Below, one piece after another: positions 351 through 45,836 of a stretch of 64,000 nt of DNA. Each line of letters starts with the position of its first letter. Within the stretch, counting starts at the first letter, position 1. Position numbers and translations under genes: made by a program. The DNA is taken from contig CATNEN010000029.1 of the NCBI GenBank assembly GCA_950097015.1, forward strand, positions 124,001 to 188,000. Reading direction: 5' to 3'. The notes beneath the pieces are model-generated. The model was given only the letters and a program-made list of their open reading frames with translations. It was not told where the DNA came from and made no database searches. Source of the DNA: Macrostomum hystrix. Lineage: Eukaryota; Animalia; Platyhelminthes.

Positions 351-1151
351 TAAAATCAGGCATAGACTAAAGTTAATCGACAGTAGAACTTCAAGGCAGC
401 TGTGCAGAGAGCAAAAGTGCACAATTTTGAGGTCGGCAGGCAGTTTATGTAACGCGATTAATATGCATATGAGAAGGAAAAAACAATATGGAATTTGATT
501 TAATGAAAACAAAAAATAACCAAGAATAAATCACATTTTTGCTGCGAGTTTTGCATATAGAGAGACTGCGCGACAACTGCGCCACGGAGGCTTCGTTGTA
601 GTTTGGATTTTCAATTCTCGATCACACTGGCTTGATCAAATCGACTTTTATAGTGACACATCGTTAAAATTGTCCTTCGGTCATGTCTTTGAGCAGGTTG
701 GCAACCAATCAATCATTGGGATCTGGGACTACTGGAATCAGCACTTCAGCCAGGCTGGCGGAGTCTTGCCCTGCTTCCTATACCTGTTGCACTCGTACGC
801 TCGCATGAGCACATTCTCAGGTCCGCGCCGCTTCCGGTTGAGCACGGCCTCGCCGACATCCGGGCGCTGCCTCATCAGGTAGATCAGCGATTGCGCAACA
901 GCCAGACGATTGTCTTCAATCGGTTCGGCGTTCAAATCGAGTAGCAACGCTTTCGAAGGCGACAGGGCGACGGCGTCCAGGACTGGTAGGAGGACCATCG
1001 ATAGCGCCAGACAGAATTGAAGGCCTGTGTTGAGTAGCATAGCTTCGTCAAATAGCTGTCAGTGTTCTCTTGGCTGTGTCTCTAATTGTCTCTCTCTCTC
1101 TCTCTCTCGGTCAAGTGAAGTGAACTGGGACTGCCGCCGCTGGCCTATTTA
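351..1151. repeat. Segmental duplication unit, copy 1 (partner 3261-4047)
   Basis: Near-identical alignment by eye from taaaatc...gactaaa.ttaatcgacagtagaac to gctggcctattta. Confidence 0.95.
738..1040 (-). CDS. Putative secreted prepropeptide, copy 1 (100 aa; signal peptide, propiece, RKRR, 28-aa two-Cys peptide)
   Basis: ATG-initiated intronless ORF. Hydrophobic N-terminus ends in AVA-LS. RKRR at aa 69-72 precedes GPENVLMRAYECNRYRKQGKTPPAWLKC. TATAAATA lies ~110 bp upstream. The paralogue at 3631-3942 keeps the frame. Confidence 0.72.
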   Translation of the reverse strand: MLLNTGLQFCLALSMVLLPVLDAVALSPSKALLLDLNAEPIEDNRLAVAQSLIYLMRQRPDVGEAVLNRKRRGPENVLMRAYECNRYRKQGKTPPAWLKC

Positions 1152-1153
1152 TA
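1146..1153 (-). promoter_or_regulatory. TATA box of peptide gene copy 1
   Basis: Plus-strand tatttata reads TATAAATA on minus. An initiator-like CCAGTT lies ~27 nt downstream (around 1126). A GC-rich tract and CCAAT motifs lie further upstream (1215-1415). Confidence 0.65.
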
Positions 1154-2298
1154 ACCGGCTCCGGGCGGCGGCTGGGGTGTCTGCGCCGGCTTGGAATCGC
1201 CTTCTATTTTTAGCTCCTCCCCCGCCGCCGCCGCCGCCCCCAGTCCGGAGCAGCTGAGGGGCGTGGGAATAGAGCCTTCTAGTCTGACGCATTTCGCGGC
1301 CAATCGACCCGCTGCAGCGGCAGACTGGACAATCTGGCCCAAGTTTTCAAATGAATGAACCAATGACTCAGGCCCGAAAATGGACTTTGCCAATGCAGGC
1401 GTAGGGGAACCAATAGCGGATAAGTGTGTAGGCAGTCTGCTTTGAAGAAGAGGCTGTGCCTTGTTTACAAAATATAGCTTTCACAAATAAAAAAGCAGTG
1501 CATTCCAACCTAACAAACTGAAATAAAATACTATGGAGAATGCTAAGCGCGGCCACTGATGTCTGCCCCCCCCACTCCGCAACACAGACTTGCGAATTCC
1601 ACACGGCTTTACAATTTTACAATTTACAACCTAGACCAGCCTCGACTTTCTTAATAAGGGCCTTTTTACCCTCCGCTCAGACAGACAATGCTTTAATTAA
1701 TGCATCGAAACTCCCAAGTGAGGTTTTGGGTGAGTCAGGCTTGAGTCAGGCCTGACTCATGTCTCACTTCAGCTGCTCATAAGTGTCTAGGGAAGTGTCT
1801 AGTGTTTACATTTTTTTCAGGGAAAATTCAACGTTGTTAGAGAATCAGGCGGAGTGTTGGGAGAACGCCCACAACTTCCTTGGCTAACAGAAATGGGACA
1901 GGGCTCTACCAACAGGCCGCGCCGCCCACGCAGTCCTCCATTTGTCCGATAGCTCCTAGCTGTAGCTAATACCCAAGTTCCAGCGAGTATTAAGCAGCTT
2001 TTTTATGTCGGAAGATTTGCCCAAGCTTTCTCCCGCAAGTGAGTACAATTTGATTCTAAACTGTTGGTGCATGCAAACAGCAGGTGTCTCAAGGTCCGCC
2101 TACCTCCTGTGCAAACACTGCACTAGCGGAGCTGCATTCTGAGTGCGAGTAAACGTCGCCATTGTCACTGACTGCTCAAATTTTAATTCAATGTCAAATA
2201 ATGCTTTCGGTGCATGGAATGCTCTTATCTGTCTTCTCTAGCTTGTCAGCAGGGTAGGATAGTGCCGATAGCACACCAAAAGCCGCATTCCACACTTT

Positions 2299-3260
2299 GC
2301 TCTTCCACAGATCTCACTGTCTCCTTTATAGATCTCACCCGCTCTACTATGGATCTCACCGTCTCCTTTATAGATCTCACCCGCTCTACTATGGATCTCA
2401 CTGACTCCTTTATAGATCTCACCCGCTCTACTATGGATCTCACCGTCTCCTTTATAGATCTCACCCGCTCTACTATGGATCTCACCGTCTCCTTTATAGA
2501 TCTCACCCGCTCTACTATGGATCTCACCGTCTCCTTTATAGATCTCACCCGCTCTACTATGGATCTCACCGTCTCCTTTATAGATCTCACCCGCTCTTCC
2601 ATGGATCTCCCCTATCTTCTCTGAATCTCACCCTCTCTTCTCAGAATCTCACCTTCTCTTTTCTAAATATCATCCTGTCTTCTCTGGATCTCACCCTGTC
2701 CTCTATTGATCTCACCCTCTCTTCTATTGATCTCACCCTCTCTTCTATTGATCTGACCCCCTCTTCTATTGATCTCACCCTGTCCTCTATTGATCTCACC
2801 CTCTCTTCTATTGATCTCACCCTCTCTTCTATTGATCTGACCCCCTCTTCTATTGATCTCACCCTGACTTCTCTGAATATCATCCTCTCTTCTCTGGATC
2901 TCACCCTCTCTTCTATGGATCTCACCCTCTCTTCTCTGGATCTCACCCTGTCTTCTCTGGATTTCACCCTGTCTTCTCTGGATCTCAACCTCTCTTCTAT
3001 GGATCTCACACTGTCTTCTATGGATCTCAACCTCTCTTCTATGGATCTCACCCTGTCTTCTATGGATCTCACCCTGTCTTCTCTGGATCTCACACTCTCT
3101 TCTCTGGATCTCACCCTCTATTCTCTGGACCTCACCTCTCTTCTATGGATCTCATCCTGTCTTCTCTGAATCTCACCCTCTCTTCAATAGATCTCACCCT
3201 CTCTTCTCTGAATCTCACCCTCTCTTCAATAGATCTCACCCTCTCTTCTCTGAATCTCAC
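2299..3260. repeat. 21-bp minisatellite (gatctcaccctctcttctatg family; 42-bp dimers in the left part)
   Basis: Tandem units directly visible; same family as 6322-7405. Confidence 0.97.
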
Positions 3261-4047
3261 TAAAATCGACTAAAATTAATCGACAGTAGAACTTCAAGGC
3301 AGCTGTGCAGAGAGCAAAAGTGCACAATTTTGAGATCGGCAGGCAGTTTATGTAACGCGATTAATATGCATATGAGAATCAATATGGAATTTGATTTAAG
3401 GAAAACAAAAAGAAAAAATATCCAAGAATAAATCACATTTTTGCTGCGAGTTTTGCATATAGAGAAACTGCGCGACAACTGCTCCACGGAGGCTTCGTTG
3501 TAGTTTGGATTTTCAATTCTCGATCACACTGGTTTGATCAAATCAACTTTTATAGTGTCACACCGTTAAAATTGTCATTCGGTCATGACTTTGAGCAGGT
3601 TGGCAACCAATCAATCATTGGGATCTGGGACTACTGGAACCAGCACCTCAGCCAGGCTGGCGGAGTCTTGCCCTGCTTCCTATACCAGTTGCACTCGTAC
3701 CATCGCATGAGCACATACTCAGGTGCTCGCCGCTTCCGGTTGAGCACGGCCTCGCTGACATCCGGGCGCTGCCTCATCAGGTAGGTCAGCAGTTGCGCAA
3801 CAGCCAGACGATTGTCTTCAATCGGCTCGGCGTTCAAATCGAGTAACAACGCTTTCGAAGGCGACAGGGCGACGGCGTCCATGACTGGTAGGAGGACCAT
3901 CGATAGCGCCAGACAGAATTGAAGGCCTGTGTTGAGTAGCATAGCTTCGTCAAATAGCTGTCAGTGTTCTCTTGTCTGTGTCTCTAATTGTCTCTCTCTC
4001 TCGGTCAAGTGAAGTGACCACTGGGACTGCCGCCGCTGGCCTATTTA
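3261..4047. repeat. Segmental duplication unit, copy 2 (partner 351-1151)
   Basis: Aligns to 351-1151; homology stops at the TA at 4046-4047. Confidence 0.95.
3631..3942 (-). CDS. Putative secreted prepropeptide, copy 2 (103 aa; predicted mature peptide APEYVLMRWYECNWYRKQGKTPPAWLRCWFQ)
   Basis: Same architecture as copy 1 with an intact frame, three codons longer. TATA box disrupted by a mariner end. Confidence 0.7.
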   Translation of the reverse strand: MLLNTGLQFCLALSMVLLPVMDAVALSPSKALLLDLNAEPIEDNRLAVAQLLTYLMRQRPDVSEAVLNRKRRAPEYVLMRWYECNWYRKQGKTPPAWLRCWFQ

Positions 4048-4633
4048 CGAGGGTTGTGTGATAAATTCGCTGACAAACTTTCATAGCGTCTGTTTCTCTT
4101 GTACTTCGGGGCAGAATTTTTCGATACTCGTACAGACTAAGGCACCATCGATCTTATTGTCTATGGAAAATGTTCCCTCTGGCTTTTGAGACAAGGCAGA
4201 AATCGAGTGGCATTCAAACCACCCTTTTAGCCAGTATGGAGAAAAGTGAAGCTACCAAGCGCACTGTCTTTTGGTCTTTGTGGAAGCAGCAGAAGAAGCA
4301 GGCTGATATTTACCGCGAGCTGCTGCAAATCTTTAGCGAGGATGCACCTTCGAAACAAACTGTGTCAAACTAAACTGCTGACTCCTGTCCAACTGCAAGA
4401 GAGGGTCCAGATGTGCCGCCACCTACTCAACGCCTATCAAAACGAGCACGACTTTCTTGGCCGCCTGGTGACTGGTGATGAAACGTGGTTTCACTTCTAC
4501 GAACCAGAAACGAAACGGCAGAGCAGCGTCTGGAAGGCTACTCACGAACCCCCACCGGTCAAGGCCAAGGCGGTGCAGTCAGCAGGTAAGCGTATGGCCA
4601 CCGTGTTCTGGGACAGAGAAGGCATCTTGCTGC
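4048..4633 (+). mobile_element. Mariner (Tc1/mariner, DD34D-type) transposon fragment, internally deleted and 3'-truncated
   Basis: Begins TA|CGAGGG, a typical mariner TIR start. N-terminal MEKSEATKRTVFWSLWKQQKKQADIYRELLQIFSEDAPSKQTVS is followed, after a deletion/frameshift, by catalytic motifs VTGDETWFHFYEPETKRQSSVW...SAGKRMATVFWD. Confidence 0.92.
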
Positions 4634-5427
4634 AGTCAATTTAAAGTTGCAGTCTATTTAAAGTTGCAGTCTATTTAAAGTTGCAGTCTATTTAAAGTTG
4701 CAGTCTATTTAAAGTTGCAGTCTATTTAAAGTTGCAGTCTATTTAAAGTTGCAGTCTATTTAAAGTTGCAGTCTATTTAAAGTTGCAGTCTATTTACAGT
4801 TGCCGTCTATTTAAAGTTGCAGTCTATTTAAAATTGCAGTCTATTTACAGTTGCAGTCTATTTACAGTTGCCGTCTATTTAAAGTTGCAGTCTATTTAAA
4901 GTTGCAGTCTATTTAAAGTTGCAGTCTATTTAAAGTTGCAGTCTATTTAAAGTTGCAGTCTATTTAAAGTTGCAGTCTATTTAAAGTTGCAGTCTATTTA
5001 AAGTTGCAGTCTATTTAAAGTTGCAGTCTATTTAAAGTTGCAGTCTATTTAAAGTTGCAGTCTATTTAAAGTTGCAGTCTATTTACAGTTGCAGTCTATT
5101 TACAGTTGCAGTCTATTTAAAGTTGCAGTCTATTTAAAGTTGCAGTCTATTTAAAGTTGCAGTCTATTTAAAGTTGCAGTCTATTTAAGGTTGCAGTCTA
5201 TTTAAAGTTGCAGTCTATTTAAAGTTGCAGTCTATTTACAGTTGCAGTCTATTTACAGTTGCAGTCTATTTAAAGTTGCAGTCTATTTAAAGTTGCAGTC
5301 TATTTAAAGTTGCAGTCTATTTAAAGTTGCAGTCTATTTAAAGTTGCAGTCTATTTAAAGTTGCAGTCTATTTAAAGTTGCAGTCTATTTAAAGTTGCAG
5401 TCTATTTAAAGTTGCAGTCTATTTAAA
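4634..5427. repeat. 17-bp minisatellite (gttgcagtctatttaaa), ~46 copies
   Basis: Highly homogeneous tandem units. Confidence 0.98.
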
Positions 5428-6321
5428 CGCCTAGGCGTTGGAATAGCGCTGCCGCCTCCTGGTGCCACTGTTTTGCCATGACTACAGCGCGTACCAAGGC
5501 CTCAACGGAGAGCCGCGCATCTGCTGCGGCTGCCAAGAGCGGCACACCACCTAAGCGACAAGGGCAACGCAGCGAACGTCGACGCAAAGAACGACGTCGC
5601 GAGCGCAATCGCCGTGGTCGACTACGAGGACGTCAACGTAAAGCCACAGGCCAAAGCCCCGCGCTACTGGTTGGGGCGGATCTTCCGGGTGGCGCCGGAG
5701 ACCGTGAGACCCAACACCAACAGGTCCCAGCTGAACCAAAATGCGCACAACAGCTCAGGGTTGCGACGTGGAACTGTCGGACTACGACCTCAAATTAGAC
5801 ATAATAATGCTGCAGGAGCTTTCCATCAAAACCGAGCTGGGGCTTCACCAAGAGTATCTCGGCGGCGGCTGGCTCCTACAGTACACCTCAGCGGACTCAA
5901 GAGGCCGAGGAGGAGTCGGCGCTCTGATCAACCCCCGGCTACAGGGATGCACACGATGCGAAAGTCTATCACCGTGACTGCTGCGAGTTGACCTGCGTCT
6001 ACGTAGGCGCAACGTGCGTTTGTTCTGCGCCTATGCCCCTACGGCTGCGCACCCGACGGAGCACCAGCAATTTATGGAGTTCCTGTCGGCACAGCTGGAG
6101 GCGTTGGCTCAGCGCGACTCGGTGCTGGTGCTCGGAGACTTGAACGCTGTACTGCGGCAGTCCGAGCGCTCCCGTTTCGTCACGCCGCGCGAGAACAACA
6201 ACACCGACGCACTGGTTGACTTTGCAAGACGACACGACCTAGTATCGGCAAACACGCTTTTTCGGAAGCCGCTGCAGAGACTGGCGACATTTGCAGGCTG
6301 TAAGCGTCCACGCCGGAATGC
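5428..6321 (+). mobile_element. Non-LTR retrotransposon 5' fragment (Arg-rich leader plus APE endonuclease, RTE-like), frameshifted, no RT
   Basis: Motifs LRVATWNCRT, KLDIIMLQE, RGRGGVGALI, LFCAYAPT, VLVLGDLNA and DLVSANTLF spread over three frames; coding ends at the 21-bp array. Confidence 0.88.
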
Positions 6322-7405
6322 ATCTCATGAATGCTTCTCTAAATCTCATCCTGTCTTCTCTGAATCTCACCCTCTCTTCTATGGATCTCAACCTTTCTTC
6401 TCTGAATCTCATCCTCTCTTCTATGGATCTCACCCTCTCTTCTCTGAATCTCACCCTCTCTTCTCTGAATCTCAACCTCTCTTCTATGGATCGCATCCTC
6501 TCTTCTATGGATCTCACCCTCTCTTCTCTGAATCTCACCCTGTCTTCTCTGGATCTCACACTCTCTTCTCTGGATCTCATCCTCTCTTCTCTGGATCTTA
6601 CCCTCTCTTCTATGGATCTCACCCTCTCTTCTCTGGATCTCACACTCTCTTCTCTGGATCTCAACCTCTCTTCTATGGATCTCACCCTCTCTTCTCTGAA
6701 TCTCACACTCTCTTCTCTGAATCTCATCCTCTCTTCTATGGATCTCACCCTCTCTTCTATGGATCTCAACCTTTCTTCTCTGAATCTCATCCTCTCTTCT
6801 ATGGATCTCACCCTCTCTTCTCTGGATCTCACACTCTCTTCTCTGGATCTCACCCTCTCTTCTATGGATCTCACCCTCTCTTCTCTGAATCTCACCCTCT
6901 CTTTTTTGAATCTCACACTCTCTTCTCTGGATCTCACCCTCTCTTCTATGGATCTCAACCTTTCTTCTCTGAATCTCATCCTCTCTTCTATGGATCTCAC
7001 CCTCTCTTCTCTGAATCTCACCCTCTCTTCTCTGAATCTCATCCTCTCTTCTATGGATCGCATCCTCTCTTCTATGGATCTCACCCTCTCTTCTCTGAAT
7101 CTCACCCTGTCTTCTCTGGATCTCACCCTCTCTTCTATGGATCTCACCCTCTCTTCTCTAGATCTCACCCTCTCTCATCTGGATCTCACACTCTCTTCTC
7201 TGGATCTCACCCTCTCTTCTCTGGATCTCACCCTCTCTTCTCTGGATCTCACCCTCTCCTCTCTGGATCTTACCCTCTCTTCTATGGATCTCAACCTCTC
7301 TTCTCTGAATCTCATCCACTCTTCTATAGATCTTACCCTCTCTTCTATGGATCTCACCCTCTCTTCTCTGAATCTCACCCTCGTGATCTCTTCTCGTCTC
7401 TTCTC
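6322..7405. repeat. 21-bp minisatellite, same family as 2299-3260
   Basis: Units ga(t/a)tctcaccctctcttct(a/c)tg. Confidence 0.97.
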
Positions 7406-8050
7406 AGATAGTTTTTACCTGTCTTGAAAAAATTAATGTGAATTTGTCGAATAAAAGCTGTTGATCATATTATAAGATGAGAATAAAATAGCCCCTAAGT
7501 TAATTGTTAATTCGTTACTCATTCTTTCGTGAAAATGCTGTTGATTTCCAAACAGTCAAGTCTGTGTCTTCAGGTTCAGCACGTTTTTCAAATTTATTTC
7601 AAAATTAGAAAAATGCACGTTTATCTTTTTTGTCATGTCCTCAATCTATGAGTCAAGAAATGAAAATATTATCGTTGAAACTTTGAACCCGAAGAAACAA
7701 GACGTAGCTCGTATGCGTAGGTAAAATAAAAAATAATCAGGAACACCTCAGTTCATGGCCATCGCCACCAGTTTTTTTTTAATAACAGCAAGGTCCGATG
7801 TGTACACAGTGTAATGTAATTAATGTATATTCGCAGAAACGTTTATGAATTTATTTAGGAATCTTTATTCTAGAAGCAAGCAGATTAAAATCAGTTCTTA
7901 ATTCTTTACATAAATCAATCTATAAGTCAGAGCAAATCGATTCACACTCGAGCCAGCCATTGCTCAAGTGTTACAATGCTGCTGCATCACAGCTTCAACT
8001 AGGCCTCTTAACTATAGACAAACTAGATAATTGCTAGATAGGTCACATCT

Positions 8051-8555
8051 CATTCCTGATCCCATATCATACTGATATCCCAATCCTGATCCCATATCCT
8101 ACTGAAATCCCAATCCTGATCCCATATCCGACTGATATCCCAATCCTGATCCCATATCATACTGATATCCCAATCCTGATCCCATATCCTACTGAAATCC
8201 CAATCCTGATCCCATATCCGACTGATATCCCAATCCTGATCCCATATCCTACTGATATCCCAATCCTGATCCCATATCCTACTGATTTCCCAATCCTGAT
8301 CCCATATCCGACTGATATCCCAATCCTGATCCCATATCCTACTGATATCCCAATCCTGATCTCATATCCTACTGAAATCCCAATCCTGATCCCATATCCG
8401 ACTGATATCCCAATCCTGATCCCATATCCTACTGAAATCCCAATCCTGATCCCATATCCTACTGAAATCCCAATCCTGATCCCATATCCGACTGAAATCC
8501 CAATCCTGATCCCATATCCGACTGATATCCCAATCCTGATCCCATCCCATATTCC
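8051..8555. repeat. 30-bp minisatellite (actgatatcccaatcctgatcccatatcct)
   Basis: About 17 tandem units. Confidence 0.97.
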
Positions 8556-9221
8556 ATTGATCCCTAATCAATGACAATTAGATCTAATAAAATTTAAAAC
8601 CAAGAAAATTTAACAGCCTGCTATGCATGTAAAAAGTGCTGGATATCATATTCTAAGATATTCACGGACACAAACATGACACATAGACATAGGCAGCCAT
8701 TTTTATAACAGAGTAACAAAATGAGAATTGAGAAATCAAAGCGCATATAAAAAGAGACAGTACTAGTCGTATCATTTTACTACAAGTAGGCTGCTGAATG
8801 ATAAAGTGCTACAAAACAAATTCACTTTTGGTAATGTAAGTGTCGCATTTAGCTCGCATAATATATAGAAAATTGAAAAATATATATTCGCCGGAAAGTT
8901 CAGTTTGTGCCATAGAGTAGGAAATGGGGGGTTATAACTCTCAGGGTCAGAAACAATGGATGGGCCAATAGCAAGTCGCATTATGACAGGCAGTGACAGA
9001 AAGACAGGCTAGCAACGGAAAATCGGAAAGCTTAAATTATTAATGAATTTTTTAATCGCAGAAAAGCAAAATTGTTGAATTTACAAAACTTCTGTTTATG
9101 AAAATCTCAACATCTGGTAATTTGTGATCAATTGAGCACTCATCTTGGTTATACTGATGAAGGAGCTTGTAGTCCAATCGTTAGAGCTTATGAGAGTTGA
9201 CTTTGCAACTTTGCAACTAAC

Positions 9222-10175
9222 AATACACCAGCATTGATTGGCAGATTGTGAACTACCAATAAACCAGCATTGATTGGCAGATTGTGAACTACCAATAAAC
9301 CAGCATTGATTGGCAGATTGTGAACTACCAATAACCCAGCATTGATTGGCAGATTGTGAACTACCAATAAACTAGCATTGATTGGCAGATTGTGAACTAC
9401 CAATAACCCAGCATTGATTGGCAGATTGTGAACTACCAATACACCAGCATTGATTGGCAGATTGTGAACTACCAAAAAACCAGCATTGATTGGCAGATTG
9501 TGAACTACCAATACACCAGCATTGATTGGCAGATTGTGAACTACCAATAACCCAGCATTGATTGGCAGATTGTGAACTACCAATACACCAGCATTGATTG
9601 GCAGATTGTGAACTACCAAAAAACCAGCATTGATTGGCAGATTGTGAACTACCAATAAACCAGCATTGATTGGCAGATTGTGAACTACCAATAACCCAGC
9701 ATTGATTGGCAGATTGTGAACTACCAATAAACCAGCATTGATTGGCAGATTGTGAACTACCAATAAACCAGCATTGATTGGCAGATTGTGAACTACCAAT
9801 ACACCAGAATTGATTGGCAGATTGTGAACTACCAATACACCAGCATTGATTGGCAGATTGTGAACTACCAATACACCAGAATTGATTGGCAGATTGTGAA
9901 CTACCAATAAACCAGCATTGATTGGCAGATTGTGAACTACCAATACACCAGCATTGATTGGCAGATTGTGAACTACCAATACACCAGCATTGGTAGATTG
10001 GCAGATTGTGAACTACCAATACACCAGCATTGGTAGATTGGCAGATTGTGAACTACCAATACACCAGCATTGGTAGATTGGCAGATTGTGAACTACCAAT
10101 ACACCAGCATTGGTAGATTGGCAGATTGTGAACTACCAATACACCAGCATTGGTAGATTGGCAGATTGTGAACTA
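9222..10175. repeat. 36-bp minisatellite (cagcattgattggcagattgtgaactaccaataaac)
   Basis: About 26 units; slightly longer variant units at the right end. Confidence 0.97.
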
Positions 10176-10687
10176 CGATTAAACGATATTATCAAATATT
10201 ATCAAATTAAACGATATTTTGAATACCCACATAGAATCTGCATGATTTGCTTTGATCACAAAGGCACGTCACATATTGTTCATTTACGAGTCATATCAAA
10301 GACAAAAAACCTTTTCATAAAACGGCGAGAGACAAAGAGAGAACCACAGAAACGTTTTAGGAAAAAGATTTTTATTACATAGCTTGGGTACCTATAAATT
10401 TGAAATAAAAAATACTTACCAGCACGTACACAAACTCACGAACAAGTGGAAGCTTAGTTAAGTTTTAAGCGGACGAAACTTGTTGAATAAGAAATGACCT
10501 TGTCAATAAAAAGCCATTTTAGTTTGTCATCTTTGCTAATCATTAATTAAAAATAATCAGAAACTCAGCACACGGCAAGAAGCGGTGTATAACTCGGAAA
10601 AATAATCAATGTTATGGGATCTATATGGGATGATTATATAATCTAGCGTATGCAATTCCTCACAGCCAGTGGGGTTAGGGTTAGAAT

Positions 10688-13600
10688 CTACTGCAGGGAG
10701 CACATCTTTCGCATCTCCGTGTCAACCTCATCTTCCTGTGTTGGACCGTCGCATGGCGCCCGGCCAGACACATCCGGCAGCAGCTCTTCTAGGCGCGTAT
10801 CGTCGCGCTCATAGAACAACAGGTAGGCTGTGGTCATGTCCACCTGGTCCTCGGAAACCGCCTGAAAGTTTAGACGGAAGGATGGATTATGGACTAGCGA
10901 AATGGATTATACAGCAGGCATAGGGAAAATTTAGGATGAGTACGGATAGTATAGGCAGGATTGGGATAATATAGGAGGAATGGGATAAAATAGGCGGGAT
11001 TGGGATAAAATAGGCGGGATTGGGATAAAATAGGTGGGATTGGGATAATATAAGCGGGATTTGGATAATATAGGGAGAATGAGAATATATAAAAGGTATT
11101 GGGAAAATGTAGGAGGTACGGGGATAATAAAAGAGGAAAGGGATAATATAGAAGGGGATAGGGATAATATATGAGGAATAGGAATAATACAGGAGGTATT
11201 GGGATTATACAATATGAAAAGGGAGAATTTGGGAGAAATGAGGATAATATTGGAGGGATGGGATCATATTGGAGGAATGGAATAATATTGGAGGAATGGG
11301 GATAATATTGGATAAATGGGGATAATATTGGAGGAATGGGGATAATATTGAAGGAATGGGGATAATATTAAAGTAATGGGATATCTAATAGGAAAATACA
11401 GATAATGAGAAGAGCGATTTAAAAACAAAAGAACAATGTGGATCCAGGCCTAATTCTCACCTTAACAGAGCTGTCATTGAACAGGTACCACTGGCCGGTG
11501 GAATTGCGCGCATAAGACACATAGTGACCGCCGCCAAGGATGCCAGAATGGCAGATCACAGCGTACAGGTGATATTGGGCTTCGTCAGTGGCGGCCGGAG
11601 CGCCAGGGCTGGCGTGCGGCTGCAGCCTCAGGCCGCGTGTGGGACAGGTGACCACTTTGTGCGATTTCACCCAGCGATTGGCTAAGAAGTGAAAACGCTT
11701 CAGGTGCAAAATTAGCACGGGCGGCAGGCGCCACAGGCGCATAGCTAGACTGGCTGTCCGATGCTCGCGACACTTTGAACAGAAATAGGTGTCCTTATCG
11801 TTCAACTCTTCCACGCGGGTGAAGGCCCGGAAGCAGGCGTCCAGATTCATTGGCTCGGCAACGACCTGCGCGACAATGGAATCAATTTAGCCTCGCTGTG
11901 GATTCGAACTCGGGCACTCCTGTTTTTACCCAAATTCTTACCTTCTGCAGGTGTTGCAGTGATGAATCCGTAGCGAATTCCCGCTCCAGCGAGGCCTGAT
12001 AACGCAGGTGCAGGGCAGTGTGCTCCCAATCAACTGCCAAGTGATCGGAGCGCGACTCGTAAGGCGCATTGTCGCAGGGCACCGGGCAGCCGCGGCAGAA
12101 CCTGTACCAGGGACACAGGGCGCAGGCCAGGCCGCTGCCGTTGATGCACTTCACTTCGAATGGGTACTCTGAGGAGCTGACGGCGTCCCCGAGTGTGGCG
12201 TGGTTTGAGTGCGGGAACTCCGGTTTTGGAGTGACTAGGCGCTTCACCTGGGGACGGATAGGTGGGAAGACTAATTAACTGCTGACACCGAATATCACTT
12301 GAATCTAAAATCTAATGCTGACAAACCATATTCCTTGCATGACACCCACTGCTGACACCCCATGACCCTGAAATCTGACAACTACTGCTGACACCTATGT
12401 CCCTTGAATCTGACAACCACTGCTGACAAACCACATCCATTGAATCTGACACCCACTGCTGACAAACCACATCCATTGAATCTGACAACCACTGCTGCCA
12501 AACCACATCCATTGAATCTGACACCCACTGCTGACAAACCACATCCATTGAATCTGACACCCACTGCTGACAAACCACATCCATTGAATCTGACACCCAC
12601 TGCTGACAAACCATGTCCCTTGAATCTGACAACCACTGCTGACAAACCACATCCATTGAATCTGACACCCACTGCTGACAAACCATGTCCCTTGAATCTG
12701 ACACCCACTGCTGACAAACCATGTCCCTTGAATCTGACACCCACTGCTGACAAACCATGTCCCTTGAATCTGACACCTCCTGCTGACACTCTGAAAGCAG
12801 ATTGCTGAATAATCACAACCAGGAAATCCCAGCCAAGAGTAGGCCCGACTATGCTCACCTGCAGCCAGATGCAGCGATACACATCGCAGTTTTTCATGCC
12901 TGGCAGCAGAGGCAGCACGCAGGGCAGGCTAAACAGTGACGGCCTCGATTTGTGATAGGACAGAAAGTACACCTCCATGCGAATCTGTTTGCGGTGATAA
13001 ACTAACGCGAAGCCTAGGCCGCGAGATGACAAAGAAGCCGAGAGCTGCTGCTGCTGCTGCTGCTGCTGCTCTGTTGAAGGTTGCTCTGCTAGGCTATTAA
13101 CGGAACTATTCCTCGATATCTGCTGTGCTCCAGAGTTCGAATTCGGACCATTGCTATTGGCTCCGCCGCCGTTACAGACCGGTTGTCGGCCTGGCGCGAC
13201 AGCTGTACTGGCCGGCGGAGACGCAGTCAGCAGAGGAGGCGACGACACTGGCATCAGGTAAGCAAACAATGAACTGCCAGACGCCAGGTATTTGATCTGC
13301 TGCTCGTCCGATGGAAAGTTCTTAGGAACGGGGAAAAGTTTAATGGCCAGGCATCAATTGGTTATCTTTTCCCTGTAAAAAATTCGGCTGCTTCTTCGGC
13401 GGGTTTTTTGTGCAAAATAGGAGTGGAATCTACCAAAATCCCCCCTATCTCGCAAGAGTTAAAGAAACCACCCAGGAAGCAGCCGATGTAACCGTAAATT
13501 ATGCGGAAACCGCCGAAGAATCACCCGAACCAGCGGCCCATGGGTCAACCAGAGAATTATTTACGGGCGATTCCTCGGCGGTTTCTGAGCATGGAATCTT

Positions 13601-16600
13601 CCGAACTGGAGGATTCTTTGGGTGATTCCATTTCGCCACCAAGAAGCACTGAGAAAACGCCCAGTTGGGTAGATTCTAAGCATGGAATCATCCGATTGGT
13701 ATGTTTCCAGCGTTCGGCTGATTCTTTTTCTGGAATAACCGCAGATTCCAACTGGAATCACCCAAAGAAACATCCCTATTTTTTAGCGGGTTATAAGAAA
13801 TCAGACCAAATAGCTTACCAGCACTGTTGAAGATATGACAGCCGCTAGCACAATCAGCCGCTGGTCAATACTGAATCTGTCAGATACAGCCTTGCGCACC
13901 TCCGAGTACTTGTCGTCGTGATTCAACAGTACGCCAAATCTAACCGGCTGGCGCTCGTCCAAGAAGAACACTGTTTGGAGGCGGTTGGTTACGGATGACA
14001 GAGAACTGACAATTTTCATTGAACCTATCCAGATCCGTCCTGACCCATCTAGATCCGTCCTGACCTCTCCAGATCCGTCCTGACCCATCTAGATCCGTCC
14101 TGACCTATCCAGATCCGTCCTGACCCATCTAGATCCGTCCTGACCCAACAAGATCTGCTCTGACCCATCTAGATGTGTCCTGACCCATCAAGATCCGTCC
14201 TGACCTATTTACAATTTTCCTGACCCATCTAGATTTGTCGTGACCCATGTAGATCCGTCCTGACCTATCTACATTTGTCCTGACCCATCTAGATTTATCC
14301 TGACCCATCTAGATTTGTCCTGACCCATCAAGACCTGTCCAGACCCATATAGATCTGATCTGCACTGTCCCATCTAGATGCGCCCTGACCCATCTAGATC
14401 TGCTGTGAACAACCCTTATGTCCTGACTCACCCATGCAAAGAAAACTCACCAATAACTTCGATTAGCAGAGAGTTCTCTAGCGGCAGCGGCAGAGACAGC
14501 ACTGAGAATGGATCAAATTTGACAGATGAGTTTGAGCACACCTTGCACTGAACCTCTGTGCGCAGTTGGCCATGAAAAAGATCTACAATGATGCTCTGAT
14601 TGCGGGCCAGGTGATTGTCCCAGCATTCGGCGGCCACCTCGTCATCTGGCCGACCGTCCGAGTCCTTTAGCTCAGTATAGGGCTTCTCCTTGACTCGGTT
14701 GAGATCTTCGTGAAGGCCGTCTAGTAAGAAGCTGAGAAATTCCTGCGAGTCGTGCTGCTGATTGCCAGAGAATCGGCGCGAGTACCTGGCTATGGTCATC
14801 TGAAATTGAGTTTAGCCAGAATTAATTACGAACTTTACTTCTGAATTACTACATACTGTTCTCAATTGCTCTCAATACTGTTCTCAATTTACCCATAATG
14901 TTCTCAATCGACCCATACTGTTCTCAATTAACCCATAATGTTCTCAATTGACCCATACTGTTCTCAATTGACCCATAACTGTTCTCAATTGACCCATACT
15001 GTTCAATTGACCCATAACTGTTCTCAATTGACTCATACTGTTCTCAATTGACCCATACTGTTCTCAATTGACTCATACTGTTCTCAATTGACCCATAACT
15101 GTTCTCAATTGAATCATACTGTTCTCAATTGACTCATACTGTTCTCAATTGACTCATACTGTTCTCAATTGACTCATACTGTTCTCAATTGACTCATACT
15201 GTTCTCAATTGACTCATACTGTTCTCAATTGACCCATACTGTTCTCAATTGACTCATACTGTTCTCAATTGACTCATACTGTTCTCAATTGACCCATACT
15301 GTTCTCAATTGACTCATACTGTTCTCAATTGACCCATACTGTTCTCAATTGACTCATACTGTTCTCAATTGACCCATACTGTTCTCAATTGACTCATACT
15401 GTTCTCAATTGACCCATACTGTTCTCAATTGACTCATACTGTTCTCAATTGACCCATAACTGTTCTCAATTGAATCATACTGTTCTCAATTGACTCATAC
15501 TGTTCTCAATTGACTCATACTGTTCTCAATTGACCCATACTGTTCTCAATTGACTCATACTGTTCTCAATTGACCCATACTGTTCTCAATTGACTCATAC
15601 TGTTCTCAATTGACCCATACTGTTCTCAATTGACTCATACTGTTCTCAATTGACCCATAACTGTTCTCAATTGAATCATACTGTTCTCAATTGACTCATA
15701 CTGTTCTCAATTGACTCATACTGTTCTCAATTGACCCATACTGTTCTCAATTGACCCATACTGTTCTCAATTGACTCATACTGTTCTCAATTGACCCATA
15801 CTGTTCTCAATTGACTCATACTGTTCTCAATTGACCCACACAAACAATTGACTTCAATACAATTAAGTTTCCCTCAGATTTCTATTGTCAATAGTAGGCC
15901 AGCAGCTACTCAAATCAGAAAGCCAGCCAAACCAAACTCACCCGCAGTTTGAGCGGGGCCACGACTGAAGCATTGCCGTTCCACATGTCTTTGATGAGCT
16001 CGGCGTACCGCTCCGCCATGTGGCCCTTCATGCCCATGGGATTTGAACTGCAGAGTAAAATGATATTTTAAGGGACTTTTGATTGGGAGATATTCGAGAT
16101 TTACGGGTTAGATAGCACGTGTACTAATAAATCACAAAATAGTAATAGGCCAGATAATACAGTAGTATGTAGTGCAGCTCAATTAGGCACTCACCGGTTA
16201 AGCTCGTACAGGTGCAGGCCATTCTGAAAATAGGCTGTAAGCGTAGGCGTATTGCTAACGCACTGCAGAGCCGAATTTAGAAAGCAGGTATTGCCCAGAT
16301 TATTGAGGCCCGTGACGCCGCGCATCATTGAATCGCGCCGACGAACCAGAGACCGACTCTTGGCTAGCTCGGCCAGCTCCTCTGGCCAGGTGAGGTCCCG
16401 ATTGCGAACCTCGAACAGCAGGCAGCCGCCACTGTTCGGCAGGCCGATCTCCTCTAGACAGGCGCCCTCAGATTCCAACGGCTCCAACTGATGGCCGTCA
16501 TCCAGGACGCGCCATAGACGGAAGTTTTCCTTGGGGACAGACATGCGCTGGCTGAAGAAGGTGTACAGCTGCCCGACGGTGTGCCGACGGCTGAAGCAGG

Positions 16601-19600
16601 CCGAATGGCACAGAATTCGGCGAGGTATGGCAACGGCTGAAGTTGCGGCGTCAAGGCCTGCACCGGCGGAGCCTGAGGCCGATGAGGAAGACGACAAGGA
16701 CGAGCCGCCGTGAACAACACCTGCGGCCGCAGCGGCGGCCATCGCGGCCGACATTGGCAATACGCCGGAGATGAAGCGTCCAACGCTGGCCGCCCTGCCG
16801 ACAGCTGACGAAGCGGAGCCGGGAGGCCCGCCTGGCGGAGGCGGCGACTGGTGCTTGAGGATGCCGACGGAGATAGGATAGAGCTCAAGGCCGCCGTAGT
16901 CGGTGACCAGGCGAGGCAGGGACGGCCCACCGCCGTACCAGGCCTGCAGGGCCCACCAGACCGGATCTGGCAGCATCTGGAAGTCCTCGCCAGGCCGCAG
17001 CGGTCCGCCGTCGGAAGCGCGCCGCAGTAGGCCACCCTCGTTGGTGAGGGTGAGCGGCCGGCCAGGACAGGGCGCCAGCAGGGGGGCATTGTTGATGGCA
17101 CCCGGTTTCTGCGGCGGAGCCTTGCTAGCAGCCGAAGCTGACGATGACAGATAGGATCCGCCGCCGATGGAGTTGGCGCCGAGACTGCTAATTGACGAAG
17201 TCTTCTGGTGACGCCGCGGCTGCAGAGTCTGGGACTGCGGCTGCTGCAGCTGCAGCTGATAGTGATGATGCTGCGGTGCATCGGCATCGAAGCTGACGTA
17301 TTGCTGCCAGGCGGCCCACCAGGCGGGGTGCACCAGGAACCAGTTGTCGCCGGGCTTCAGGCCGCGCCTTCGCTCCCTATTAACCCATTCGTAGACTATG
17401 CGCTGCTCGTCCTGGCGGTACTGCGGCCGAAGTCCCAGCACAATGTGGCACACCTTTGCAAGGAGCGCGAGTTATTATCGATGTCGATCACTCGAAAACA
17501 GGCGCTCAAACTCAAGAGAAATTTAAACACCCGGCAAGATTCTAACTTTCTTTCACCTACCTGGTACATGAGTCGCATCAGGGCCTCCCAAAGCGAGTTG
17601 CTAAGCGACCACATTAGGTATTCCTCGGTGCTGACTAGCAACTCTTCGCCGTGCAATTGCAGCAGCTCGCTGGCTACCTGATCAACCAAATCGGCGTCCA
17701 CCGCGGACGAAGCGGAGGCTCCGCCATTGACGGCTGACGGCAAAGACGAGGAGACAGACGGGGCAGTGGTTGGCAATGTTGAGCAGTCGTCAACGCTGGT
17801 TTGACTCTGGGCTAGAACAAAGGCGCTAACCATGCGACGAACGTCGTGCTTATCTAAGTAGCCGTCCCGGTCACGATCGAATACTTTGAAGCAGACTGGC
17901 ATAAATATCGATTAGATACGTGGGGCGCTTCATTCGACTTTATTCATATACCTTAGCTAACTTTTGTTCTTCTGTTTGCTTATCTTGTCGATTGTTATCA
18001 CTCTTATCCATCGTTATCCACCAAGCCCATTGTTATTAAGCTTGTTCATTGTTATCTATATTGTCTATTGTTATCTCCATTGTCCATTGTTATCTCTATT
18101 GTCCATTGTTACCCCCTTTGTCTATTGTTATCTCCGTTGTCCATTGTTATCTCTATTGTCCATTGTTACCCCTTTTGTCTATTATTATCTCCATTGTCCA
18201 TTGTTATCTCTATTGTCAATTGTTATCAATCTTGTTCATTGTAATCACCATTGTTATCTCTAATGTCCATTGTTATCCATCGTGTCGATTGTTATCTCTA
18301 TTGCCAATTGTTATTTATTTTGTCAATTAGTATCCCTCTTGTGACTTTTTATTAATTGTTATCTCTCTTGTCAATTGCTATCGACCTGGTCCATTGTCAT
18401 CTCTAGTGTTTGTTATTATCCATCTGGTCCAGTGTTATCTATCTGGTATTTCTATCAGTTCTGGTCCATAGTTCCTATAGCATGGAGACTTAATACTTCA
18501 CAAAAAACTGCTAATTACATTTCTGCCGCTCCGTGATGGGACCCCGGCAGCAGGCGGAGATGCCGCAGGACATCTCTTTGAAATCAATATGATCGTCATT
18601 GTTCTCGTCGAACGCGGCAAAGAAGCCATCAACAACGTTGTCGGGTATTGGCGGCGACACTAGACGTCGAAATGTAGTGAGATCGAAGCGACCCGACTGG
18701 GAGAGACCCTTGAGGTACCAGTACCTCTTCTCCAGCTCGATAATATCCTTCTCGTCAACTGGGTTTGGAAATCGTTAATAAAAAAGCGAGATCTATAAAT
18801 CTATACTTGCGCAACAGCAGCACAGCACAATGGGCACTCACGGTGAGTCACACCGGCCAAAATCTGATAGAAACTCAACGCTTCGGAATCGTCCGACAGT
18901 CTGACAACGCACGGATCCTTCAATAGCCAAGTTGAGAATGCTGTCACACACGGATGCTCAAGTAGCCATTTAGTAAACTGCTCAAGATTGGCTTTATCGC
19001 GCAGTTTAAATAATTCCTGCAGCTCTGGAGGCGACCGACCGTCTGTATCAAGGATGTGCGCCTCCAGCTGAGCCTTGTCAACATGCGTCCCGGCCTCGTT
19101 GCTATAGACGCAGAACAGAACTGCGAAATGGTGACGGATGGGTTAGTTGCAGAGTAGTCTAACGCTTTTGCCTCTCGCACCAAGTACCCTGAGCTCGATT
19201 CGGCGGCAAGGCGACATTCATTTGGTACACTGCCTGACGATGAGAAAGTCAGGCAGATTTACAAACTTGTTTGAGCGTGTGCCTGCGCACAGAATCTGTG
19301 TGCGTGTGTGCTCGAGAGTCAGGAGGCTGCGAGTCCACAGTCACCAAATAATGTATCATTGTCTGCAGCCCTCCTGCAATTAGTATTATATTTTTATTAC
19401 GGTAACGCGTCGTATTCTCGCAGCAAGTTCCATGAGCTGGATTACGCGGCGAGGCCACAATAATTTAGTTTACAAACTGCCTTAATAATGAGAAAGCCTA
19501 CTCGCTGACTAAGGGTCACCAAATGGTTGTGTTTGCAGCATCCATGAAGAAGATCATTTTTTATTAACGGCTTTATCATCAGGAGTGGAAATTTGGGTGG

Positions 19601-37100: not shown

Positions 37101-40100
37101 AGTTTAATGTTCATTTCATAACTTCGATGACTTTTGTTATTCGTAAACTTAAAAAACGCTAATTTTCTAAGAAATCATAGTCATTCTTCTTCTCTGCTCT
37201 GCTCTCGGCAATGCAGCGCCGTCCACCTGAAGGACCTGATGCAGCTGAGCGCAGCCCTGCCAGACAAGCTGACCGGAGCTGCCACAAGTCGGTTTTTCAA
37301 TTTTCGCAAACTGGCCCAACTGGCCCAGACCATCTGCCTGCTGATCTCAGCTCAGGGCACCCCAATCAGTATCGAGGAGAACCCGAACCTGTGCAATACG
37401 CTCAGGGTAAATGCCAAATAATAATAATAATTGCAGGAGGGCTGCGGGCAGTGGCACATCATTTGGTGACACATAGACACGCAGCCAGCGAGAAGGCGAT
37501 TCTGCTCATTTTGCTGACTCCTGACCACACACTCACACAGGTGTGTACATCTGCCCTGATTTTCTCATCGTCAGGCAGTGTACACTTTCACTGTGCCTTA
37601 GAGGTTGGCCTTCAAGCGCGTAAATTGCACGACAAGCCCCCAAGCCTTCTCTCCGCGACTGCGCCCAAAATAAATGTGGCCTCGCCGCGGAATCGAACTT
37701 AGGGACCTTCATGGCGCGAGAGGCAAACGCGTTAACCGCTCTGCCACCGACCTCCTTAAAATAGCTCAAAGAAATTGATATTTAAATCAAATAGTTTAGT
37801 CTCGTCTGTATATCCGTATTCCTCTTTGCAGCTCTCGCTGGATTGTCACTACACGGAGGACGACATCTATGAAGTGTCCCTGCTGAGGGAGCCTCGCTGT
37901 TTGGCTTCGGTAATTTAGTTGCCATGACAACTCGGACAGGTGCTAATTAGGAATTGCAACACGACCAGCCGGAAATGACATCCATTTTGGATGATATGGA
38001 AATTCCTTTACTAATTAAGCATGGAGTCGTAGTCAATGGACTGGAAAGGCCGTTTTACTTGCCCGAGTTTCTACTTCGGAAGGACACAAAACAGCTTCCC
38101 TCAGGCCCAGATTCGAACTCCCGACCTCACAGGTCTGAAGCTCTCACAATAAGGCCTTTTCTTATAAGTCTATACAAGGTAGGCCGACTCATGCTCTCAG
38201 AGGCACCCAGGGATAAAAATAGACAATCAGATAGGGAGGATTCAAGATCCTCGAGCCTGCTATAGTCATCTCGGCCACGATTTGCAAGCCAAACTAATAA
38301 TTATTCAGCAAATTTGTTTCTGCTCCCAGCTGAAATCATTGCACCATGGAGGCTAATAATTTATTTTTCTCTCCGAGAAAGTATTTTCTTATAGTTTTAC
38401 GCTAATGCGACACGAATTGCACTATTAGCCTAGGCTGACTTTGAGATCTAACGTCCCCTGCAACTCAAGCAGCTGCAGTTGGGACTTGAGTTGAGGGGGA
38501 GTTTGAGTAGAAGTCCTAGGAATGCAGCTTTTTTAATCTTTTCAAGTAAAACTTTCATTTCTATTTCAAAGGCTTGCTGAGGTTTTCCGGCCATCGTTTT
38601 ATGGTTGCTAAGGGGCTTACGACTTGTCCACCTGGAAAGCAGATTAGCTTTTCAACTAGAACATGAACAGACACAAAATAGTCTGCTAGCTCTCGTAGAC
38701 TCATGTATGTAAAATAAAACTTTTTTTAAAAATTAACAAAAGTTTCACGTCAACCCACAAGCCTTCAACCCCAACTAAGCCGGTGGTATTCGCGCAGTGG
38801 GTCTCAGGTTCGAAGCCACCACATCCTGAGACGCTTAAGAGGCACATCTTCGACATGGTTGAGGTAAACTCTCGGCAGAAGTCTGTTTCAGTCGCAGCAC
38901 ACTAATTCAATATATTTGACTGCCTCACCCAACCCAACCCACATCCAACCTACATCCACCAATCATATCATCAGTTTCTTATTTTCTAAAAGCCAACCTC
39001 ACTCCGCGTCAGCCCGTCAATCCTGTCTACTCTTATTTTCTAACCCGCGAAGCTCCACCTCACTGGACTCGCTTCAGCCCGCCAATCGTCACCACTCTTA
39101 TTTTCTACCCCAAAAACCCACCTCACTCCGCTTCAGTGCGCCAACCGTCACCACTCTTATTTTCTACCCCAAAAACCCACCTCACTCCCCTTCAGTCCGC
39201 CAATCGTCACTATTCTTATTTTCTAACCCACGAAGCCCCACCTCACTCCGCTTCAGACCAATCAGTATTCCCCTTACGATTATTACTAATGCTCCATTCT
39301 ATTTTACTCTGCTCTATTCAGGCTGTGTTCAAGGTCTATGACCACGACAAGGACGAGATGATTTCCGAAGCTGAATTCGAACAGATTGCAGAGAATTTCC
39401 CCTTCATCGACTCATTCGCTGTGCTAGACACCGACAAGTGAGACTGACAATAATGCCAGGGCTGTAAGGCACTCTCAGGAATTTAAAGTGCAATTTCTAA
39501 ATTTGTCTCGGGTGCAATCGGGTGTTAACTCAGGTGCAACGAAAAATTGTTCCAAAGTGCTCGAAGATGACCAAATTTGGAATGGGCGTAGTTAAGTCAA
39601 ATAGGCGAAGAATTAGAAATTACTTTGAGCACGCTTCGTCACCTCTCAGATATCCCTCAGGTATAGGTCAGGTGAGTAGATTCTTGCGCTAAGCTGTCAT
39701 GTAAGGCGCGGGTGACATGAAACGTCCTTACTCAGCCAGTCAGGCTACAACTGACAGGATTATTTAACAAAAAGCTGATTTACTAAAGCAGAGAACGAAG
39801 AGGAGGCCGCCTGTAAGCCAATGCAGGTGAGAGGAGGCGGGAATCGAAAATTATTTCCCAACCTGACAGAGCTTGCCTGAGAAATATATTGCTATTTGTC
39901 CGAATGAGATCAAAGCATTTTTTGATCCTTAGATATATGGGACATTGTCGCGAACGATTCCTCTGGGAGCTGACAATGGGAGAATTGCATTGGGTCCAAT
40001 GTGCAACCATGCATTTTAGTTGGCAATATTCTATAAAGGATTAGTTGTGCTTTAGCCAGCATTTTCATTCAGTTCCACAACAATCTAATCTACAGTACCC

Positions 40101-43915: not shown

Positions 43916-45369
43916 CGAACCTATCAACCAACAACTAGTTATTTTTCGTATTTTGCAGAACTGTCATCTCGCTCCTCGCAGAACTGTCCCTAATTATGCG
44001 CCTTCTTCACGGTATAGTTCTGAAAGAAACTTTAAATATTTTATTAATACTTTTATTGATAGAATATTTTCTGAGTCCCAATAGCTTTTCAATCGTGCAG
44101 CGCAAGAAACTAAATTGCATGTTATTTTACGTCTTTGAGCAATTAGCGTTTTGAATGGATGGCCTGCTTTCAATGCCAGATCAATAAAAATATTTTAATC
44201 GATAACAAACTATTTGGCATCAGTATTAACGAATTACATTTCAGGCCCGTTACATTTACATTTGCTGAGGTGCGCGGAATTCGACTTTGTGCTTTTGTAA
44301 GCAACCTGTAATCCACAATCCGGAAAGAAAGTTTAAGCGACTAAATAAATATTATTTTATTTGTATTTTAGTAAAGTATCATTCCAAATATATTTCGATT
44401 TGAATAAAACAACGATATAAAAAGTGCACTATCCAATTAACATCGTAAAATTTATATATTTCATTTTGACCTGACTACCTCAAAGTTAAATAACACTGAA
44501 ATTCTAAAAAGCATTTTTACTATATAATTAGCAATCCAAAGTCCAAACCTAAGAGCTCTGAAAATAGAATGTGTTTAACTAGTGTTTTTCTAAAAATAGA
44601 CTATTCACGGTAAACCCCAATCTAAAAATAGCCTTTCCAGACGAACCAGATCTAAATATAGAATGGCCGCTGAAGAACCCCAATCTAAATATGGTAATAC
44701 GCGAAAACCATATTTCTAAAACTAGAATGGAGATCTCAGTTATCTTATCTTAATGTCTAAGTTAAAAAAAATTATGGTGCACATCGTCTAGTAGCCTGTC
44801 GGTTGGATGAGTAAAATGGCCAAAATAATGGACATATAATCGATTGATTTATGCCTCTAAAACGCGCAGGGTCAGAGGTGCCTAGCTGGTTGGCTATCAC
44901 AGAGAGGTACATACTGAAATTGGATAATAGACAACGTTTAACTGTATAGCACACGATAGATATAAAGCTGTTTACACTATGATAGTTAGTAAAAATCAAT
45001 TGATGGACGCTCACTTTTAGAACTCCGCACAGTCGACTCAAACAAGACTGCAATTTACGAGGGCGTCAAGACACGAAAGAATGAAAATATCAGATTTTAC
45101 AACAGCACTATAGTGTGAACCGCACGCTGAACATCGAAAAATGAAGAGGTTCTCTTTCAGAAAAAAAGAGAAAATGAATTTTACTAAGTCGTCTGCAGGT
45201 CAGTCCGAATGAGGCACCTAGAGGCGAATCGAGTGAGTCGTTTAAAACATACCGCCGCACAAACGCACATACGACGTACTTACTATAAGTAGAAACAAAC
45301 GGAAAAATACATCGCGAACAATAGCTGTTAAAAAATGTTAGTATCCCATTTCATTTGCGACATCGGGTG

Positions 45370-45836
45370 CACTGACAGGACAGAGCGACAGGACAGAGTG
45401 ACAAGACAGAGCGACAGGACAGGGTGACAGGACAGAGTGACAGGACAGAGTGACAGGACATAGTGACAGGACAGAGTGACAGGACATAGTGACAGGACAG
45501 AGCGACAGGACAGAGTGACAGGACAGAGTGACAGGACAGAGTGACAGGACAGAGCGACAGGACAAAGTGACAAGACAGAGCGACAGGGCGGAGTGACAGG
45601 ACATGGTGACAGGACAGAGTGACAGGACACAGTGACAGGACAGGGTGACAGGACAGGGTGACAGGACAGGGTGATAGGACAGGGTGACAGGACAGGGTGA
45701 CAGGACAGGGTGACAGGACAGAGTGACAGGACAGGGTGACCGGACAGGGTGACCGGACAGGGTGACAGGACAGGGTGACAGGACAGGGTGACAGGACAGA
45801 GTGACAGGACAGGGTGACAGGACAGGGTGACAGGAA
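45370..45836. repeat. 13-bp minisatellite (acaggacag(g/a)gtg)
   Basis: Tandem units between the convergent genes. Confidence 0.95.

Follow-up and report, generated by a model that had tools for sequence, protein, structure and literature searches.

A conserved orphan gene for a probable peptide precursor in the flatworm genus Macrostomum and a diverging tandem copy in Macrostomum hystrix

C-type natriuretic peptide (CNP) is made from a precursor that consists of a signal peptide, a furin-cut propiece and a C-terminal 17-membered ring (C-x15-C), which ends at the second cysteine. To our knowledge, the natriuretic peptide family is known from vertebrates. The precursors of somatostatin, allatostatin-C, urotensin II and melanin-concentrating hormone (MCH) are about 100 amino acids long and carry a C-terminal peptide past a basic site, with one disulphide ring at or near the C-terminus; these rings hold 6-10 internal residues. 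The arenicin-type peptides of annelids are cationic, contain 20-30 residues and one disulphide, and are cut from the precursor C-terminus at a basic site. In the present study, we compared with these systems a tandem pair of open reading frames (ORFs), copy 1 and copy 2, in a window of 64,000 nucleotides from the flatworm Macrostomum hystrix (assembly GCA_950097015.1, contig CATNEN010000029.1, positions 124,001 to 188,000 of the forward strand). The original prediction, made from the DNA alone, had read the two ORFs as signal-pro-mature precursors of a lineage-specific peptide family, and nothing that it had named as contrary to this reading was found. The results demonstrated that copy 1 is a genuine, conserved orphan gene of Macrostomum, which probably encodes a peptide precursor and is transcribed in M. 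lignano. The two copies and their predicted parts were as follows.

738-1040, minus strand: coding sequence (CDS) of copy 1, 100 codons plus stop, supported by HMMER, by synteny and by the ratio of nonsynonymous to synonymous divergence (dN/dS) against M. lignano
966-1040, minus strand: predicted signal peptide of copy 1, residues 1-25, from hydropathy and the -3/-1 rule applied by hand
825-965, minus strand: propiece of copy 1, residues 26-72, with 43 amino acids of net charge -2 followed by RKRR
741-824, minus strand: predicted mature peptide of copy 1, 28 amino acids, net charge +4, isoelectric point (pI) 9.6, last codon Cys
3631-3942, minus strand: CDS of copy 2, 103 codons plus stop, a fast-changing duplicate
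3868-3942, minus strand: predicted signal peptide of copy 2
3727-3867, minus strand: propiece of copy 2
3634-3726, minus strand: mature part of copy 2, 31 amino acids, net charge +3, 8 aromatic residues

The original prediction had placed two minus-strand ORFs at 738-1040 and 3631-3942, and both were recovered there, with 100 and 103 amino acids, respectively. Both were intronless, and their proteins were identical at 91 of 100 residues in an ungapped alignment. The predicted common layout was also borne out, namely a hydrophobic N-terminus, a 43-residue propiece, RKRR at residues 69-72 and then the C-terminal peptide. Likewise, C-x15-C was present in both copies, the net charges of the C-terminal peptides were +4 (copy 1) and +3 (copy 2), and 8 of the 31 residues in the mature part of copy 2 were aromatic, all as previously claimed. 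The two cysteines of the copy 1 peptide were 16 positions apart, which corresponds to a 17-membered ring. In reduced form, the predicted mature peptides have calculated average masses of about 3310 Da (copy 1), 4008 Da (copy 2) and 3220 Da (M. lignano), and a disulphide would lower each by 2 Da. The maximum Kyte-Doolittle mean of the h-region over 11 residues was 2.5-2.6 in the window copies and 2.5-2.9 when M. lignano was included. In all copies, the net charge of the propiece was 0 to -2 (anionic or neutral) and that of the mature peptide was +3 to +5. A profile and pattern search detected no third copy of the gene within the 64-kb window.

When 1.84 billion representative proteins were searched with an HMMER profile and no restriction on length, four matches were obtained. 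One of them was genuine: PAA64917.1, a 'hypothetical protein' of M. lignano (BOX15_Mlig013743g1), with an E-value of 6.2e-21 and an alignment covering query positions 3-100. This sole genuine match came from the same genus, in agreement with the proposed lineage-specific family. The other three matches were to long repeat proteins, from Xenopus, a weevil and Spironucleus, and were rejected as spurious. In one of these, a stretch of 25 residues weakly resembled the propiece, and this likeness had been added up across dozens of repeats; another had no significant pairwise alignment. By tblastn, identities of 58% and 53% over 102 columns were obtained against M. lignano. Mlig013743g1 has a near-identical sister, g3, and further records of the gene are PAA47625.1 and PAA73750.1. 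Counted from its Met, the Mlig013743 protein is 97 amino acids long, and its 28-residue C-terminal peptide is identical to that of copy 1 at 23 of 28 positions. It shares with copy 1 the D-A-V-A / L-S-P-S motif, RKRR, C-x15-C and a stop directly past the second Cys, and it differs from copy 1 in the length and sequence of the propiece, where one conserved island stands in a variable stretch. RKRR was invariant in the five gene copies of the two species, and the A-x-A motif for signal cleavage was kept in M. lignano. Thus, the conservation of the frame, RKRR and both cysteines that the original prediction expected of a homologue was observed, and in addition the M. lignano protein kept the position of the stop.

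Mlig013743 is encoded at three loci (L001, L002 and L003) of the M. lignano assembly GCA_002269645.1. At each locus, it lies between a gene of 1456 amino acids and a Delta/Jagged-like gene. Exons of the 1456-amino-acid gene matched the window at 10686-14802 on the minus strand, with 78-87% DNA identity, and their order and orientation were as expected. Copy 1 is the conserved positional orthologue of Mlig013743, as judged from sequence and gene order. Each M. lignano locus contained one copy of the gene, and the tandem pair was found only in the genome of the window. The loci differed from each other at four CDS sites, all four of which were synonymous. We also noted that L002 and L003 were the same throughout the gene and 1 kb of flanking DNA, and that L001 differed from them by about 2-4% in the flanks; this pattern fits the report of duplicated subgenomes in M. 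lignano. The 1456-amino-acid gene had no Pfam domain, and a minisatellite (12312-12776) was located inside its match in the window. Separately, 37469-37638 matched L001:14010-14177 (170 nt, 77%); this pair was not collinear with the synteny block and is probably a shared repeat.

The comparison of copy 1 with M. lignano revealed 37 synonymous differences at 72 sites and 48 nonsynonymous differences at 204 sites, giving a dN/dS of 0.32 (Fisher p 2e-5) at a synonymous divergence of about 0.9. This ratio shows purifying selection on the gene. The nonsynonymous divergence (dN) was 0.115 in the mature part versus 0.37 in the prepro part, and the propiece was the least conserved and contained indels. 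According to these sequences, conservation between the species is highest in the mature peptide. The coding frame was the only one open in all three species copies. As a side observation, the synonymous divergence (dS) of the mature codons (741-824 versus L001:10295-10378) was 0.43, compared with 1.14 in the prepro part; this difference concerns 28 codons only and is unexplained.

The GenBank gene models of M. lignano are RNA-seq transcripts above an expression cut-off, from which those overlapping repeats were removed (PMC5730564). Because the models were derived from RNA-seq with repeats excluded, Mlig013743 is transcribed and cannot be counted as a repeat. The transcript that the original prediction looked for was therefore available, for M. 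lignano, as the RNA-seq-derived model of the homologue. The family is already present in GenBank as a 'hypothetical protein' but is undescribed and unnamed. In the literature search, neither the Mlig013743 identifier nor the short peptide motifs occurred in any paper found, and papers on planarian prohormones, helminth antimicrobial peptides (AMPs) and toxin-guided peptides contained nothing matching.

The original prediction had also given copy 1 a promoter with a TATA box and an initiator-like motif. This was verified: TATAAATA stands at 1146-1153 on the minus strand, and a TCACTT-type initiator-like motif follows about 32 nt downstream. Upstream of the gene, the DNA of the two species was otherwise unalignable, and four elements were common to copy 1 and the three M. 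lignano loci. A CGGCGGC run was one of them, and the other three were as follows.

1202-1226, minus strand: 25-nt upstream block, identical in copy 1 and all three M. lignano loci
1146-1153, minus strand: TATA box of copy 1, aligned to TATAAAT in the three M. lignano loci
1113-1124, minus strand: TCACTT repeat, likely transcript start of copy 1, aligned to CACTT in M. lignano

The transcript-based model of M. lignano starts inside the aligned CACTT, about 40 nt past its TATA box, which speaks for transcription of copy 1 starting near 1116-1121, with a 5' untranslated region of about 80 nt. The 25-nt block occurred once in the window, at copy 1. Its core, CTAAAAATAG, fits YTAWWWWTAR, which we take to be a MEF2-type consensus; this gives a lead for the block as a candidate site. 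Across the whole window, YTAWWWWTAR had 15 matches versus 7 expected, and three of these matches lay within 72 nt at 44590-44661.

The assignment to a known family was negative in the searches performed. Neither of the ORFs, nor the M. lignano protein, had a match in Pfam or NCBIfam, even at an E-value of 10. A sequence profile search of the PDB returned POU-homeodomain matches only, at E-values of at least 0.1, which were taken as chance. An AlphaFold2 (AF2) model submitted to Foldseek had no match in the PDB at an E-value of 0.001 or below. The claim that the ORFs resemble no transposon and no named family thus agreed with the Pfam, NCBIfam, PDB and Foldseek results. A transposon-derived ORF was rejected on the lack of a Pfam match, on the presence of only two copies, in tandem, in 64 kb, and on the single type of syntenic locus in the repeat-excluded M. 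lignano annotation. An exact look-up of both window products found no record. The word-index protein search with the whole of copy 2 and with residues 61-100 was also blank; these blanks carry no weight because the same search missed the known homologue PAA64917.1.

Copy 2 belongs to a duplicated block with one end at the TATA box and the other about 375 nt beyond the stop. The block and its immediate neighbours were as follows.

362-1151, no strand assigned: duplicated block, copy 1 side; 93.4% identity over 798 columns by blastn
3265-4047, no strand assigned: duplicated block, copy 2 side, with a minisatellite at one end and a mariner-like fragment at the other
2310-3260, no strand assigned: 21-nt minisatellite, lying between the copies and adjoining the copy 2 block at its 3' end, from Tandem Repeats Finder
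4048-4640, plus strand: truncated mariner-like fragment, neighbour of copy 2, with Pfam HTH_48 and Transposase_1

The promoter homology of copy 2 stopped inside the TATA box, at TA, which is where the mariner-like fragment starts. HTH_48 and Transposase_1 lay in different frames of this fragment, so it contains at least one frameshift; it is also truncated at the 3' end. Its terminus is a presumed one, because no second copy of the fragment turned up when one was searched for. In the adjoining DNA, a 17-nt satellite at 4631-5427 (47 copies, 97% match) cuts off the mariner-like fragment. It is followed at 5478-7411 on the plus strand by a remnant resembling a long interspersed nuclear element (LINE), with a weak endonuclease/exonuclease/phosphatase match and ORFs over several frames. 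A 21-nt minisatellite inside this remnant (6334-7382) has the same unit as that at 2310-3260.

The tests on the divergence of copy 2 were selected once the data had been seen, and the counts behind them are small. With M. lignano as the outgroup, 10 of 11 polarisable differences between the copies fell on the copy 2 branch (binomial p 0.012). RKRR and the cysteines were kept in copy 2 and the conserved stop was lost, so that the reading frame of this copy continues for three more codons. Of the 15 differences between the copies, seven were located in the 87 nt of the mature peptide and stop, which corresponds to about 8% versus 3.2% in the flanks. All seven of these mature-part changes were nonsynonymous, and four of them created Trp or Tyr codons. 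Furthermore, no indel was present in the 300 nt of CDS versus five events in the 463 nt of duplicated flank (P about 0.04). With these counts, directional change appears to describe the pattern in copy 2 better than random decay does.

Regarding the product, we propose an intronless, TATA-driven gene for a secretory prepropeptide of about 100 amino acids, which probably serves extracellular signalling in the manner of a hormone or neuropeptide. The hydrophobic N-terminus would take the precursor into the endoplasmic reticulum, where signal peptidase would cut past A-V-A (residue 25). An enzyme of the furin or prohormone-convertase type would then cut past RKRR and release the 28-residue cationic C-terminal peptide. 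A disulphide would close the 17-membered ring, and the peptide would end at the second Cys. We infer the secretion, the cleavage, the disulphide and the signalling role from the sequences themselves. A conserved mature peptide next to a variable propiece is the pattern of receptor-binding signalling peptides and not that of defence peptides or toxins. In the AF2 model, the predicted local distance difference test (pLDDT) score was 85-87 over residues 81-100 of the mature part, which was the best-predicted portion, and the predicted fold consisted of a helix at residues 74-89 followed by a Pro-rich turn. A more far-reaching proposal is an undescribed, macrostomid-restricted hormone or neuropeptide system with a ring convergent on that of CNP, in which positive selection would have made copy 2 rich in Trp and Tyr and given it a new target; we regard this as doubtful.

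Other roles were weighed against signalling. A host-defence (antimicrobial) peptide from epidermal, gut or gland cells, with the propiece masking a membrane-acting peptide, would explain the net charge of +3 to +5, the single disulphide and the propiece charge of 0 to -2. A helix is predicted for the first two thirds of the mature part, and copy 2 displays the pattern of toxins and AMPs, with a conserved prepro part, a fast-changing mature part and Trp/Tyr gains. Moreover, the classical AMP families of lophotrochozoans are missing from flatworms, in which orphan families are therefore to be expected (PMC10414684). On the other hand, the mature peptide was the most conserved part between the species, not the most variable, and M. 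lignano has one gene per locus, without family expansion. The conserved copies also had a low mean hydrophobicity of the mature peptide (-0.28) and a helical hydrophobic moment of only 0.38-0.42 (-0.09 to -0.28 and 0.38-0.50, respectively, over all copies), and this combination makes a membrane-lytic peptide less likely. Defence is unlikely as the role; the conserved mature part, the low hydrophobicity with its modest moment, and the single gene per M. lignano locus tip the balance slightly towards signalling and away from a membrane-active defence peptide. An exocrine peptide of a reproductive or other gland, such as a seminal-fluid peptide of the prostate gland that is passed to the partner, appears quite unlikely. 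Many gland and seminal-fluid transcripts of Macrostomum are indeed lineage-restricted, evolve fast and have no homologues (PMC5977470, PMC7336406), and a genus-restricted family with a quickly changing duplicate would suit such a role. Against it, the orthologous mature part was well conserved at a dS of about 0.9, unlike typical reproductive proteins, and the Mlig013743 identifier was absent from the supplements of the reproduction-related RNA-seq study searched. It is very improbable that the product is an uncleaved small secreted or membrane-anchored protein, or that the transcript is conserved for another reason than the ORF. Processing and secretion were deduced by reading the precursor, and the low dS of the mature codons could hint at constraint at the nucleotide level. 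The dN/dS of 0.32, the exclusively synonymous changes among the M. lignano loci, the single frame open in all copies, the invariant RKRR directly before the best conserved segment, and the lack of an Rfam match in the window all speak against this explanation. Several points weigh against signalling itself. The family members found belong to two species only, so conservation amounts to one comparison, and copy 1 against copy 2 alone gave a ratio of nonsynonymous to synonymous differences per site (pN/pS) of about 1. The positive charge and partial amphipathicity of the peptide would suit a defence peptide as well, and the AF2 model, built on a four-sequence alignment, had a mean pLDDT of 65, which means low overall confidence. 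The MEF2-type fit of the upstream block hints at expression in muscle or other non-neuronal tissue and offers no support for a neuron-specific gene. Finally, the Mlig013743 identifier was absent from the supplements of the M. lignano papers searched, and no tissue data were found there.

For copy 2, the sequences point to a young tandem duplicate that may be either acquiring a new activity or decaying. A working paralogue and a decaying duplicate are about equally likely, and the chances are even that only copy 1 is functional and that copy 2 owes its intact frame to its youth. Several losses fit decay. Copy 2 lacks the conserved 25-nt upstream block, its homology ends in the TATA box at the mariner-like fragment, and it no longer has the stop that copy 1 shares with M. 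lignano. At the 3' end, homology ends in the minisatellite, short of the region with the only AATAAA of copy 1. The concentration of polarised changes on the copy 2 branch (10 of 11) is in line with this, and the intact frame is unsurprising because there have been so few changes. Random decay does not predict that the changes cluster in the mature codons, that all of them are nonsynonymous and that four yield Trp or Tyr. The lack of CDS indels versus five flank events (P about 0.04) also argues against decay, and a TAAATA remnant and the start motif are still present in copy 2.

Elsewhere in the window, large exons on the minus strand at 16191-17902 encode a USP32/USP6-like deubiquitinase (EF-hand, DUSP, ubiquitin-like and the start of the UCH domain). 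Unusually dense minisatellite arrays with units of 17-36 nt and longer were found at 8047-10184, 41473-41925, 45338-45928, 56548-57306 and 59785-61991; they give rise to long spurious ORFs in several frames, and such an abundance of repeats is in keeping with a Macrostomum genome. No part of the window appeared to be human.

Most catalogued flatworm peptides come from planarians and parasites, and few of them have a cysteine ring. The present locus supplies a small orphan peptide gene with a compact conserved promoter in a genus that includes a laboratory model. The tandem pair is, in addition, a natural example of the events right after the duplication of a peptide gene: copy 1 is frozen, and copy 2 has a mature part that changed faster than its flanks and a promoter that was hit by a mobile element.

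We further compared the gene with the described systems named at the outset. Compared with the arenicin-type peptides, it has no BRICHOS or other Pfam domain, a predicted helix plus Pro-rich turn instead of a beta-hairpin, low hydrophobicity, and a mature part that is conserved between species. It resembles the precursors of somatostatin, allatostatin-C, urotensin II and MCH in layout, more loosely than that of CNP, and differs from them in having 15 internal ring residues, in the absence of their signature residues, and in giving no Pfam or HMMER match; the literature search found no flatworm member of these types. Copy 1 and the M. lignano protein share with CNP the precursor layout, C-x15-C and a last Cys that is the last residue. 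They differ from it in that no Pfam model matched at an E-value of 10, natriuretic models included, and the residues that define the natriuretic ring were absent on inspection. The resemblance to CNP is one of layout only, with no sequence relation. Collectively, the precursor logic of signal, propiece, furin-type site and disulphide loop is standard and involves no new principle; the family that uses it here is undescribed, and the gene belongs to none of the named families compared, only to the unnamed Mlig013743 group.

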